IMG/VR virus record: IMGVR_UViG_3300033997_000243
Location: 248,001 to 312,000 of that record
DNA: 64,000 bases
Direction: 5' to 3' (one strand)
The notes below the pieces were generated by a model that was not told the DNA's origin, did no database searches, and worked only from the letters and a program-made list of their open reading frames with translations. The translations under genes and the position numbers were made by a program. Below, piece after piece: positions 53,311-55,961 of the stretch (positions are counted from its first letter, which is position 1; each line of letters begins with the position of its first letter).

Positions 53311-53336
53311 AAAAAAGGCCACAGCAAAGTGGCCTT
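53311..53336 (-). terminator. intrinsic terminator closing the structured-RNA island
   Basis: AAGGCCAC/GTGGCCTT plus U6 on minus strand. Confidence 0.8.
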
Positions 53337-53342
53337 GTGTTT

Positions 53343-54356
53343 AATAGATTTTTGTTCTGACGGCAAAACGCAACAGACTGTAATATGTACTGGTGCTCGA
53401 ACAAAGCCAGTGCGAAAGTTGAATCTTACCGTCAGAACAAAAATCTATTTTATTCGGTGGGTTTGTTTTCCTTGTCCAAAATGCGAACAACAAACCCACC
53501 TGCTGGATTATTTAATATCGGTATTGCGGCTACCGAGATTTGTTCTTACCCTCTCAACAAGATAAGGAGTCATGTAAATAACAAATCGCCAAGCATCATA
53601 TCAACGAGTGCTTATAGTGAGCAGGTTTATGCTCCACTTGTACAACGCGAACAGTTAACCAACCTTTAAGGTCAAAGTAATCTGTTATACGTTGAATGTT
53701 GGTTGATATGCGAAAACTTTCTACGGATGACCGCCGTAAATTGTTTTCGCGGTTAATACAAATCGTTAGAAAAAAGATGAATAGAGTTACCATGAATATT
53801 CCTGTATAGCGGCATTTCAAATACACGACCCAAGAATTGAAGCAAGGAAAAAAGTCCAAAAACCTACAACAATTCAAAGTCTAAACATTGCTTAATGTTA
53901 GATTAAGGTTTGTACTCTCAGCGGGAGTTCGCGTCAGCACGTTCATGTTTTGAAATAACGAATGAGTGCGTGAGATACTCACAATACTAACCGACTTGGA
54001 GGGACGCAAGTATTGTCTCGTTGTTTTTCCTCTATAAGTTCATCAGCACAGCGGCAAGGAAGAATCCGCCTCACACAAAACTTTTTCAAGGACTGCTTAA
54101 ACTAATGCCGCGAAAAATTAGAATGCCTGTTCGACACAACTTGCTTGGAACCCCACGTACCTAAAAGGAGATCGAACAGACAAAGATGTTAAAGGAGATT
54201 CCACTAAAAATCTCGAAGTTAGGCTACTTCGTATAAAGTCTAGTCAAGGGATCTAGCTTGACATAATAAACTTTGCACTGCATACCAGCGCACAAGCAAC
54301 GGCTGTTCTGACCTAAGACAAAAAATGTCTCTGCTTGCAGATCTAAAGTGGAATCT
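53343..54356 (-). ncRNA. candidate large structured ncRNA(s), ~1 kb
   Basis: No credible CDS. Contiguous stems including a 21-bp perfect IR (53343-63/53429-49), a 12-bp IR (53456-67/53489-500) and a 10-bp IR (54196-205/54347-56); G-U extensions mostly favour the minus strand. Confidence 0.65.
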
Positions 54357-54687
54357 ACTTTAACATATTCAAAATATCTTCAAATTCTTCTGTAGTCAAT
54401 TGGTTTCGTTCAACTAAAATTTTCATGTAATTCAAATACAAACCTTTTGAGTAAGAAGTTTGGGCTATCAAGAATTCTACTTCAGGCCAACGACATTTCT
54501 TTTCGCGCAAAACAATTAAAGCGCATCTGTAAGGTATTCTATTTGGAGGCAAAGAAGTTAAAGCTTGCTTAAGCGTTGTAAATCTTCGCATCTGACTCCA
54601 ATAAAAAGCGCAGAATTTTTCTTTGTTGTTAAGTTCAAGAAAATGTTTAGAATAAAATTCAGGGCAATTTAAAAACTCTGGTTCCAT
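54355..54687 (-). CDS. hypothetical protein inside RNA island
   Basis: 110 aa ORF, RWPEVEFLI motif. Confidence 0.7.
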   Translation of the reverse strand: MEPEFLNCPEFYSKHFLELNNKEKFCAFYWSQMRRFTTLKQALTSLPPNRIPYRCALIVLREKKCRWPEVEFLIAQTSYSKGLYLNYMKILVERNQLTTEEFEDILNMLK

Positions 54688-54705
54688 AAATGATTACCAA
54701 ATAAA

Positions 54706-54819
54706 GATTCCTGTTCAGTGATACACTTAAACCACCAACTTTTCATAGTCTCCTACGCGGCTAAGTGCATGACTATCTTAAGTTACTTAGCTAACTGAAA
54801 TAAGTTTAGTGTTGGAATC
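54706..54819 (-). ncRNA. candidate structured RNA domain
   Basis: Nested GATTCC/GGAATC, ACACT(T)AAAC/GTTTAGTGT, TTTCA/TGAAA, TAGTC/GACTA, AGTTA/TAACT. Confidence 0.45.
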
Positions 54820-54906
54820 AAAAACTTAGCGCAATCAAAATAACAAAAACTAAAACAAGAGAAAGCAGATAGGGTTTTAATTCTGAATAATCTGGAAGCA
54901 TTTTTG

Positions 54907-55019
54907 TTACCTGTTGAAAGTGGAGCGGGCAATGGGAATCGAACCCACATCATCAGCTTGGAAGGCTGAGGTAATAGCCGTTATACGATACCCGCATTAA
55001 CCATGTTTACCTGTTGAAA
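54907..55019. repeat. 13-bp direct repeat TTACCTGTTGAAA flanking the tRNA
   Basis: Exact copies at 54907-54919 and 55007-55019. Confidence 0.85.
54921..54995 (-). tRNA. tRNA-Gly (anticodon TCC), CCA encoded
   Basis: GCGGGTATCGTATAACGGCTATTACCTCAGCCTTCCAAGCTGATGATGTGGGTTCGATTCCCATTGCCCGCTCCA; cloverleaf closely resembling enterobacterial glyT. Confidence 0.97.
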
Positions 55020-55390
55020 CATGGAAAGTCACTGAAAAGCAATTTCAACAAACAGCCTCTAGTGGAAAGCATTACACTATAACCATCTATCTTATATGCT
55101 TTGATAAACGTGATCAGATCGCCAATCAGATTCGGTGGCGCTAATACAAAACAAAGAATTTCTCATGACAGCTACTCACGTATCTCGCATGTCGATGCAA
55201 ACGAATAAACTTGTTTTGTAAAACCAGTCTTGCGACCAGAAACAGCACTTAGAGGACGCTAGAGTGCCGAAATAAAAAAGACCGTAAGAAATTCTTACAC
55301 AAACTATCGGAAAGGATGTAGCGCAGACACAATCCAGTTCCTGAGTTTAGTTGCCAAACAAATACATGCAAAGTTTGGCAGGTCAGGGAA
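55001..55390 (-). ncRNA. candidate structured RNA upstream of tRNA
   Basis: Non-coding; stems CCATGTTT/AAACATGG, AAAGCAT/ATGCTTT, TACAAAACAA/TTGTTTTGTA, AAGAATTTCT/AGAAATTCTT, TGCCAAAC/GTTTGGCA. Confidence 0.5.
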
Positions 55391-55392
55391 AT

Positions 55393-55815
55393 CTATATAC
55401 TGTCTTTTATAGACAGAACTATACGGGCTTCGCCAGTTGTGACTATCTTAACTGCGGTTACAAGATGTTCAATGGATTCCATTTTAGTTTCACCAGCTGG
55501 AATTCCGGTAAGCAGATCAGATAACATCCAATCGGCTGTAATAAATTTTTCCTGTGTTTCCCCATCAGCCGGAAGATCAGGAATATTCGCAAGTTTTATA
55601 TCAGAAGCTGTGTAGAAAATATCTGTTGTTCCACTTATACTGTGAGCCTGCATGGTAAGAAATGAATAATTCTGTGGAACCAACAAAATAAAATCTTTTG
55701 TTGGATCAGATGGAACATGGTGAGTAAAAATATTTTTGTTGACTTTTAAACTGGCACTTACGTCACCAAGTTGTTCTAAAAACTTTTTACTATTTACTAA
55801 AACTATAGGTTTCAT
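55393..55815 (-). CDS. hypothetical protein inside RNA island
   Basis: 140 aa, AAGG RBS. Confidence 0.75.
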   Translation of the reverse strand: MKPIVLVNSKKFLEQLGDVSASLKVNKNIFTHHVPSDPTKDFILLVPQNYSFLTMQAHSISGTTDIFYTASDIKLANIPDLPADGETQEKFITADWMLSDLLTGIPAGETKMESIEHLVTAVKIVTTGEARIVLSIKDSI

Positions 55816-55835
55816 TTGAGTGTACCTTAATGAAG

Positions 55836-55961
55836 TGCTGGTGCGGAAAGCTAGAAGTTCAGGTTTAATGTTCTACTTTCACCCCTAAACCAAAAGCCTT
55901 GTGAGTGTAATAACAAACTGAGTGAGTTATGTTTAAATTACCTAACATTTCCGCACCAGCA
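55836..55961 (-). ncRNA. candidate 126-nt RNA closed by a perfect 14-bp stem
   Basis: TGCTGGTGCGGAAA (55836-49) / TTTCCGCACCAGCA (55948-61). Confidence 0.55.

Follow-up and report, generated by a model that had tools for sequence, protein, structure and literature searches.

The DNA analysed here is a window of 64,000 nucleotides (nt), bases 248001-312000 of the IMG/VR virus record IMGVR_UViG_3300033997_000243, which comprises 319,518 bp with direct terminal repeats and is the genome of an uncultured jumbo phage. The minus strand carries nearly all genes of the window, and along it, in the 5' to 3' direction, an intein-bearing UvsX-like recombinase gene is followed by orf282, orf262, orf113, a largely non-coding island and the thymidylate kinase gene tmk. 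This island is under strong selection, holds covarying structures on the minus strand, occurs in a narrow group of phages and matches no known RNA family other than tRNA. The best-supported reading of its conserved heart, which consists of the hairpin E2, a domain closed by the helices P1 and P2, and the long hairpin I2, is that it represents a new RNA family in one jumbo-phage clade.

About 94% of the genome is coding according to a crude gene caller, and an initial annotation of the window had pointed to about 1.9 kb of non-coding DNA at this place, interrupted by two small open reading frames (ORFs) and one tRNA gene. This description has been borne out by a frame-specific three-periodic Markov model trained on the 190 long ORFs of the genome. 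Within 53292-55967, 1,845 nt distributed over the segments IG1, IG2, IG3 and IG4 show no positive score in any frame; tmk, orf140, orf113 and orf262 have clear positive scores, and that of orf110 is weak. The interruptions are orf110, orf140 and a gene for tRNA-Gly(UCC) (Table 1).

The strong minus-strand terminator that had been annotated at the downstream end of the island is indeed a canonical one, with a G+C-rich hairpin followed by a run of six U at 53336-53311. As it leaves no room for a promoter in the 20 nt before the tmk start codon, tmk must rely on read-through or on the processing of an upstream RNA.

The tRNA-Gly(UCC) gene is the only one that ARAGORN finds in the genome, and membership in the Rfam family RF00005 is confined to this 75-nt part of the island. 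It is bracketed by a perfect 13-nt direct repeat (54907-54919, in IG2, and 55007-55019, with a spacing of 100 nt), the upstream copy of which forms the loop of the hairpin immediately 5' of the tRNA. In the relatives designated below as lineage B, both copies carry the identical C-to-T change. This repeat could be a processing signal, the relic of a tandem tRNA array or the footprint of an insertion.

Table 1. Features of the island and its borders, in window coordinates.
Feature	Position	Strand	Description
tmk, thymidylate kinase gene	52653-53291	-	Pfam PF02223, E 1.5e-22; constant downstream neighbour by synteny
IG1	53292-54354		1063 nt; no positive frame
Intrinsic terminator	53311-53336	-	8-bp stem with 5 G-C pairs, then six U; 20 nt before tmk start codon
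I2, long hairpin	53343-53449	-	27 contiguous pairs in A; apical motifs GUUCGRG and CAUAUUACA
I9 hairpin	53456-53500	-	perfect inverted repeat, 12-bp stem plus extension; three compensatory pairs in B
Middle hairpin series	53505-53800	-	compensatory pairs in at least 5 hairpins, A vs B; absent from lineage C
H4	53618-53635	-	hairpin in middle series, common to A/B and E
P1 domain	53809-54111	-	~300 nt, closed by covarying helices P1 and P2
Helix P1	54104-54111 / 53809-53816	-	8-bp long-range closing helix, 4-14 nt past E2
Helix P2	53943-53955 / 53815-53828	-	inner helix, covarying; spans 141, 138, 137, 135 nt (A, B, C, E)
Hairpin Hx	53981-54016	-	loop GCGUCCCUCC; common to A/B and E, three covarying pairs
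TAATTTT, promoter-like	54114-54120	-	3 nt before P1 5' strand; kept in B, not recognisable in C, E
E2	54125-54181	-	hairpin, 10-bp stem, loop with conserved GGGGUUCC; lineages A, B, C, E
E1	54183-54369	-	multi-branch, 36-bp imperfect closing stem (inverted repeat I1); overlaps orf110 stop codon
orf110	54355-54687	-	small ORF, weak coding signal; lineages A and B only
IG2	54688-54920	-	233 nt; no positive frame; spacer from tRNA to orf110
tRNA-Gly (UCC), CCA encoded	54921-54995	-	ARAGORN; Rfam tRNA (RF00005) 59.9 bits vs threshold 29
IG3	54996-55392	-	397 nt; no positive frame
IG3 hairpin	55001-55024	-	just 5' of tRNA
IG3 helix	55210-55220 / 55145-55156	-	
IG3 GCAA-tetraloop hairpin	55224-55239	-	
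IG3 hairpin	~55245-55269	-	loop with GCGUCCUCU
IG3 weak terminator-like hairpin	55270-55298	-	
orf140	55393-55815	-	140 aa; clear coding signal; syntenic marker of the clade
IG4	55816-55967	-	152 nt; no positive frame
IG4 element	55836-55961	-	Y-shaped RNA, 14-bp closing stem round two hairpins; between orf113 and orf140
TAATTTA, promoter-like	55934-55940	-	inside IG4 element
ACTGTAAAT	56048	-	inside orf113

Selection, pairing and strand

The window and its relatives have been assigned to lineages labelled A to F, the window itself belonging to A. The other members of lineage A (L004/L011, L010, L012 and L013) are 98-99% identical to the window and too alike to be informative. Lineage B consists of the contigs L008 and L009, which derive from one run, overlap by 30 nt inside the tRNA and encode proteins 72-75% identical to those of the window. 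Lineage C (L016-L021) was retrieved by an exhaustive profile search with orf140, whose homologue there is 52% identical; the corresponding values are 36% in lineage D (L022), 36% in lineage E (L024, a 286-kb JGI contig) and 27% in lineage F (L023). From A to F the same gene order is found, running from the recombinase gene to orf262-like, orf113-like and orf140-like genes, after which a long non-coding gap precedes tmk, the contigs of D and F ending before the gap is visible. This gap measures 953 nt in lineage C, where it contains neither a tRNA gene nor orf110, and 1,632 nt in lineage E, where it opens with genes for tRNA-Met and tRNA-Gly.

The clade is narrow, with four to six lineages that all come from subsurface, drinking-water and wastewater metagenomes. 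Among 50,697 deposited phage records, a blastn search matched the tRNA only, and the orf140 family is absent from the same records. Scans with single proteins and with protein alignments returned only the two known IMG/VR relatives, and a DNA pattern of the core returned only the close relative from the IMG/VR and JGI metagenomes. In GTDB genomes the motif pattern gave two chance matches, both inside coding genes. A looser pattern hit 36 IMG/VR loci, of which L014, the close relative, and the lineage E contig are the only real ones; when 35 of these loci were scanned with the models described below, the lineage E contig alone passed. No copy of the locus has been found elsewhere in the genome.

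The two ORFs of the island had been proposed as partners of the RNA, and neither is supported in this role. Homologues of orf110 are missing from lineages C, E and F, and the small ORFs that occupy the equivalent place in E and F are unlike it. The orf140 product has no Pfam or PHROG match, and its homologues (75, 52, 36, 27 and 36% identity) all lie between the genes on the uvsX side and the RNA locus, a synteny that holds equally for all its neighbours throughout the clade. Its AlphaFold2 (AF2) model (predicted local distance difference test, pLDDT, 71; predicted template-modelling score, pTM, 0.66) is a beta-sandwich that gave only generic matches of low template-modelling (TM) score in a fold search, with no RNA-binding fold. 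Matches to toxin C-terminal domains were likewise discarded, as they have low TM scores and reflect generic beta-sandwich similarity only.

Comparison of lineages A and B reveals how strongly the non-coding DNA is constrained. Identity amounts to 89% in IG3, 87% in IG4 and 83% in IG1, against 77.5% in orf113, 77% in orf110 and 73% in orf140; IG2 reaches 72% when a 53-nt insert in lineage B is counted. Over six flanking genes, identity is 55% at four-fold degenerate sites, 62% at third, 84% at first and 90% at second codon positions. The 83-89% identity of the non-coding parts, set against the 55% of four-fold sites, indicates strong selection, and IG1, IG3 and IG4 are constrained about as much as the codon positions that determine amino acids. 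Within IG1, the core 53905-54022 is 95-98% identical.

Selection of this kind could in principle act on the DNA itself, as at a replication origin or a packaging site, or the island could be a decayed tRNA array with no RNA function. Inverted repeats are found at origins too, the tRNA content of the locus varies among the lineages, and lineage B carries a truncated tRNA. However, purifying selection here equals that on amino-acid-determining codon positions, and ARAGORN and Rfam find no degraded tRNAs in IG1. Iterons and families of direct repeats are absent, the GC content is the same as that of the genome, and the extremes of GC skew fall at gene-strand switches (106, 200, 240 and 314 kb), so that a replication origin was rejected on skew, composition and the absence of iterons. 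Moreover, the substitutions in the stems are strand-asymmetric, as expected of G-U pairs in RNA (see below). An explanation at the DNA level, or by decay, is therefore extremely improbable.

The truncated tRNA just mentioned lies immediately upstream of orf110 in lineage B (L009:281-326, 46 nt; Rfam tRNA, 30.5 bits). It keeps the acceptor stem, the start of the D arm, the T arm and CCA, and lacks the anticodon arm; nhmmer ties this remnant to the tRNA-Met of lineages E and F, whose location corresponds to its own.

Folding stability was compared with that of dinucleotide shuffles on both strands. The z-scores on the minus and plus strands are -9.7 and -6.4 for the whole of IG1, -9.9 and -4.7 for E1 (54183-54369), -9.0 and -8.4 for the block 53305-53503, -3.6 and -2.5 for 53505-53800, and -6.0 and -3.8 for IG4 (-5.0 in a separate estimate), the minus-strand fold being the more stable one in every segment. 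The scores of IG3 (-2.05), IG2 (-1.65) and the P1 domain (-2.0) do not surpass those of two coding controls, orf140 (-2.1) and orf262 (-4.1). The island had been described as almost continuously tiled with inverted repeats, with shuffle z-scores suggested as a check; this holds for IG1 and IG4, which are strongly folded, but not for IG2 and IG3, about a third of the non-coding DNA, which are not unusually structured, nor does the P1 domain exceed the controls in stability.

A non-circular test was also applied, in which pairs predicted from the window sequence alone were scored by the substitutions of lineage B. On the minus strand of IG1, 28 of 58 one-sided changes keep the pair (30 break it), as do 14 of 16 double changes (2 broken); on the plus strand, 15 of 50 one-sided changes are kept (35 broken), together with 17 double changes against 4 broken. 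Five coding controls, pooled, give 67 of 242 one-sided changes kept (175 broken) and 20 double changes kept against 14 broken. When all changed pairs are taken together, the minus strand of IG1 (42 kept, 32 broken) differs from the controls (87 and 189) with an odds ratio of 2.85 and p 1.2e-4 in Fisher's test; for one-sided changes, the same comparison with the controls gives p 0.004 on the minus strand and p 0.73 on the plus strand. In IG4, the minus strand shows one compensatory change and four one-sided changes that keep the pair, with none broken (p 0.003 in comparison with the coding controls), against three broken on the plus strand. The one-sided changes that are kept convert G-C or A-U into G-U pairs, which can form in only one of the two strands, and they thus indicate that the structures are selected in a minus-strand RNA, as had been claimed from the orientation of G-U stem extensions. 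RNAalifold adds 20 compensatory pairs across about a dozen hairpins of IG1 and three in IG3, and covarying pairs beyond those of the controls are found in independent lineages.

Modules shared among distant lineages

Profiles built from lineages A and B with nhmmer match C and E collinearly, after which the equivalent helices were checked by inspection and with a script. In this way three modules have been found to recur in syntenic relatives whose orf140 is 36-52% identical to that of the window. A model trained on A and B that covers E2 and the 5' strand of P1 (R2) matches C (E 0.0012) and E (E 0.0013), and a second one, covering I2 and the terminator (R1), matches the lineage E contig at L024 12315-12464 (36.7 bits, E 1.2e-5). 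All these matches sit at syntenic positions and have no competitors. Across A, B, C and E, the helices of E2, P1, P2, Hx, H4 and I2 are perfect, their spans staying nearly constant although most of their sequence differs. The motifs of the locus occur nowhere else in the genome, which indicates that they are not consensus elements of promoters.

The stem of the first module, E2, is perfect in each lineage but unrelated in sequence, with 10 pairs in A and in B, 8 in C and 12 in E. The second is the P1 domain, whose closing helix P1 is present in the independent minimum-free-energy fold of each of the four lineages and spans 303, 301, 286 and 273 nt in A, B, C and E; one of its pairs covaries in C and six covary in E. 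Directly after the 5' strand of P1 stands the invariant AUUAGUUUA, and an AAACCU linker is also conserved. The hairpin Hx within this domain shows the loop pattern GCGUCC(C)UC in A/B as well as in E. In the middle series, the region of H4 (53592-53639) matches L024 12103-12150 in nhmmer (E 3.4e-6).

The loop pattern in its longer form, the C/U-rich GCGUCC(C)UCY, has just two copies in the whole 319.5-kb genome, at 55245-55269 and 53981-54016; both lie in loops of minus-strand hairpins of the island, and the pattern recurs in the homologous hairpin of lineage E (L024 ~11724). A pseudoknot between the loops of E2 and S2, seen in lineage A, is not conserved and was dropped.

The third module is I2, an inverted repeat with a sliding z-score of -6.85, in which lineage B differs by several G-U changes and a single compensatory pair. 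In all four lineages (A, B, C and E) I2 is the final element ahead of tmk, and its basal stems, though perfect in A, C and E, differ among these three. The terminator that follows it is kept in lineage B, has an analogue in lineage E and is absent from lineage C.

According to these data, the main rival to a dedicated RNA locus is a cis-regulatory role for tmk, in which I2, with or without the upstream domains, would sense a ligand or bind a protein and so gate read-through of the terminator 53311-53336 in A, B and E, and entry to the ribosome-binding site (RBS) in C. The constant position of I2, its conserved apical motifs on covarying stems and the need of tmk for read-through, given a terminator that leaves no room for a promoter, are all consistent with such a leader. 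So is lineage C, in which no terminator is present and 28 nt separate the hairpin from the start of tmk, and the weak best Rfam matches of the region are leaders of the hairpin-plus-terminator type. The likeness to riboswitch or attenuator leaders resides in the succession of a structured element, a terminator and the RBS of a nucleotide-metabolism gene. Unlike those leaders, however, the locus shows no alternative pairing and no match to a riboswitch family: Rfam gave no rows for riboswitch classes, and on inspection no anti-terminator pairing is conserved across A, B and E, a candidate seen in lineage A being weakened in B and absent in E, for which reason it was dropped. A stem as long and perfect as this one (27 bp) does not resemble known aptamers, 470 nt separate the P1 domain from tmk in both A and E, and about 870 nt far exceed any known leader. 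A tmk leader appears rather unlikely.

The extent of the locus bears on another proposal, namely that it encodes one giant ornate RNA, either of about 870 nt (E2 to the terminator) or of up to 2.6 kb including the tRNA, analogous to GOLLD and ROOL and possibly multimeric. Although lineages A and E are distant, the stretch bounded by E2 and the terminator is similar in architecture and length in both (871 and 851 nt), and the z-score of -9.7 for the whole of IG1 would fit a single folded unit. The context is linked to tRNA genes, as it is for GOLLD and ROOL, lineage E having tRNA-Met and tRNA-Gly directly upstream. Against a single RNA, lineage C lacks the middle ~370 nt as well as the terminator, no long-range helices other than P1 and P2 connect the modules, and neither GOLLD nor ROOL is matched even at E up to 10. 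The depth in RNA libraries also argues against it, as it varies greatly along IG1, from about 300 in the core through 16 at 53520-53709 to almost nothing at E1 and I2. This proposal is very unlikely.

The elements E1, IG2, IG3, IG4 and orf110 are confined to lineages A and B, which add structured modules (IG4, parts of IG3 and E1) and tRNA-Gly round the conserved heart. The pairs of E1 are kept in lineage B, and the IG4 element contains the perfect inverted repeat I3. IG3, the best-conserved non-coding stretch, has no counterpart in lineages C or E; it was considered as a second copy of IG1 and rejected, since no significant similarity extends beyond a short loop motif. The best-supported reading of this distribution is that lineage-specific structured modules and tRNAs came and went around the conserved heart. 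The tRNA is dispensable for the conserved modules, because lineage C has them without any tRNA. The setting beside a tRNA gene, which the initial annotation had likened to that of the T4 stable RNAs, GOLLD and ROOL, is supported.

Two ORFs overlap these hairpins. The plus-strand ORF at 53385-53669, of 94 aa, has been annotated as a gene in public calls on close relatives; it lies over the I2 and I9 hairpins, shows no coding signal and no Pfam or PHROG match, and is lost in lineage B, so that it was rejected and the annotation is probably false. The minus-strand ORF 53596-53877 likewise has no Pfam or PHROG matches and no coding signal.

Known RNA families, expression and function

At the gathering score, the tRNA was the sole Rfam 15 match of the window; with the limit relaxed to E 1 and to E 10, the window and four relatives gave nothing but tRNAs and chance-level rows, two of which reflect the combination of a long hairpin and a terminator at 53303-53481. 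The search that had been suggested thus returned no family for the island other than tRNA, in agreement with the proposal of a conserved structured RNA outside known families. The absence of signatures of tmRNA, RNase P and group I/II introns, noted in the initial annotation, has been corroborated by Rfam and ARAGORN: ARAGORN found no tmRNA, and Rfam gave no rows for tmRNA, RNase P, 6S or SRP RNA and no catalytic-core rows for group I/II introns or small self-cleaving ribozymes. For GOLLD (RF01998), neither the gathering score nor a limit of E 1 yielded a match, and a limit of E 10 yielded none in IG1 or in the lineage E locus; the window and its relatives showed no covariance-model match to ROOL (RF03087) and no match to OLE, raiA or HEARO.

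GOLLD and ROOL are encoded by phages near tRNA islands, GOLLD env-38 being located downstream of a Met-tRNA, and the linkers of GOLLD sometimes hold tRNAs (10.1101/2024.12.08.627333). The present locus resembles them in being phage-encoded, large, composed of many helices and situated beside tRNA genes, and the lineage E locus, like GOLLD env-38, lies downstream of a Met-tRNA. Unlike GOLLD and ROOL, it shows no covariance-model similarity and has an architecture of its own (E2, the P1/P2-closed domain and I2), the part that is conserved is smaller, measuring about 300 nt, or about 870 nt if every module is counted, and it is known from one rare jumbo-phage clade only.

In the tRNA region of phage T4, two stable RNAs that are not tRNAs, species 1 and 2 (rnaC and rnaD), are encoded, whose function is still unknown. 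They measure about 120-140 nt, have tRNA-like ends and are presumably processed from precursors that they share with the tRNAs; to our knowledge, Rfam holds no model of a T4 stable RNA. The domain described here differs from them in its length of about 300 nt, in having no tRNA-like features and in being kept by lineage C without a tRNA. In RNA-Seq contigs a depth spike is seen at 53848-54117; these contigs carry no strand or end information and show no precursor.

A third comparison concerns the RNase III processing hairpins of polycistronic phage transcripts, such as the R sites of T7. The locus shares with them near-perfect long stems at gene junctions, E1 standing where orf110 ends, IG4 ahead of orf140 and I2 ahead of tmk. 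It differs in the conserved apical motifs of these stems and in a far larger conserved non-coding context.

Large structured RNAs beside phage tRNA genes are thus a kind already known, and this family is new by every test applied here. GOLLD, ROOL and the T4 stable RNAs have been puzzling for a long time, and the locus adds to them an independent family from a jumbo-phage clade without a cultured member. The constraint on about 1.8 kb of non-coding DNA equals that on protein-coding positions, which implies that the locus plays an important part in infection. Its modules, its covarying helices and its short invariant motifs offer experimental handles, and the connection with tmk suggests a regulatory hypothesis that can be tested; at present, the narrow distribution and expression data in the form of contigs limit the impact.

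Expression was assessed from the k-mer depths of assembled contigs of public runs that match the window. In run X5, a wastewater library labelled RNA-Seq with 27 million letters, a contig covering 53860-54117 has a depth of about 300, against 10 for tmk, 16 for 53520-53709, 3-8 for orf110 and IG2, and 46 for a contig that begins in the tRNA and ends in orf282. In run X6, a contig covering 53848-54058 has a depth of 27.7, compared with 5-15 elsewhere. The core of the P1 domain is therefore 2-30 times deeper than its neighbours in these small wastewater RNA-Seq libraries. In four more small RNA-Seq libraries of this study, 53-59% of the words sampled from 53800-54120 are present. The depth is flat and low in two larger runs that are flagged as probable DNA. 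It is unlikely that the depth is borrowed from another organism, because the core sequence has been found in no other organism in the IMG/VR and JGI metagenomes. These observations are suggestive of a discrete, abundant RNA from the P1 domain.

On balance, we assign a probability of roughly 0.6 to the reading of the island as a locus dedicated to non-coding RNA, which is transcribed from the minus strand, as are the genes around it, and whose conserved heart is the new family formed by E2, the P1/P2 domain and I2. The locus would be transcribed with or beside the tRNA, possibly starting at the TAATTTT-type promoter 3 nt upstream of P1, and host RNases may cut the transcript at the tRNA and at the long perfect stems of E1 and I2. 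The compact P1 domain would then accumulate as a stable RNA acting in trans through its invariant unpaired or loop motifs (AUUAGUUUA, AAACCU and GCGUCC(C)UCY), by which it may bind a protein, the ribosome or the leaders of mRNAs. Binding to mRNA leaders or the ribosome is conceivable, since GCGUCC(C)UCY is complementary to purine-rich, Shine-Dalgarno-like sequences. Processing, action in trans and the target are inferred.

Several points weigh against this reading. The P1 domain is thermodynamically unexceptional (z -2.0), and the covariation comes from four lineages only, for most of IG1 effectively from one divergent sequence, with cross-lineage helices aligned by hand and no R-scape-type statistic. 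As to expression, the RNA-Seq data consist of contigs without read-level strand or end information, and the deep contigs stop before the 3' strands of P1 and P2. Their ends fall at strain-variable sites and are thus probably assembly breaks rather than RNA ends, and the libraries are labelled as selected by polymerase chain reaction (PCR), so that a reproducible amplification bias could mimic abundance. In addition, no particular target is supported by the data, which also speak neither for nor against the decoy or scaffold role that the initial annotation had proposed. The terminator right before the RBS of tmk, together with the constant adjacency of this gene, also fits cis-regulation; if the locus is a tmk leader, termination or processing of that leader would account for the abundant RNA.

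A more far-reaching proposal is that of a jumbo-phage RNA with a new kind of function, either a catalytic or cage-forming molecule of about 870 nt or one that targets the ribosome or mRNAs and redirects translation in infected cells through its anti-Shine-Dalgarno-like loop, with I2 and the terminator doubling, in both cases, as a new switch for tmk that responds to a ligand or a protein. Such a role is distinctly unlikely.

Two motifs, ACTGTAAAT and TAATTTA/T, are enriched genome-wide 25-45 nt upstream of start codons (28-40 nt for the second one) and are candidate phage promoter motifs. Examples of their sites on the minus strand of the window are 1143, 5283, 22854, 23523, 35904, 56048, 61337 and 62393, and in lineage C ACTGTAAAT stands immediately past the stop codon of the orf140 homologue. 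These promoter-like motifs, including those of Table 1, are leads for transcription starts, not evidence of them. The window also encodes sigma-like proteins, as relatives of the ORFs 61331-62350 and 46533-47213 have matches to Sigma70_r2.

Other features of the genome

By UvsX, the nearest deposited phages are phage NCTB and Erwinia jumbo phages, with 48-59% identity; NCTB has a different synteny and gave no covariance-model matches. The UvsX/RecA-like recombinase gene of the window (57946-60177, 743 aa in the window) holds an intein-like insert. In close relatives the protein has 960-973 aa with a LAGLIDADG domain, and in lineages B, D, E and F it is intein-free and of 497-515 aa. As its size and presence differ among relatives, this insert represents a mobile intein polymorphism.

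A second conserved and strongly structured stretch, with z-scores of -4 to -5 in 150-nt windows, lies at 51826-52374. It spans the gap between two convergent genes (orf147 on the minus strand and the plus-strand ORF 51871-52173) and continues into orf147 at its 3' end. Across the gap, lineages A and B show 86% identity. The stretch may be a bidirectional terminator or another RNA. Outside the window, the crude gene caller leaves three further gaps of about 900 nt (genome C1:30220-31136, 80964-81907 and 130441-131318), which could be missed genes or additional non-coding RNA loci.

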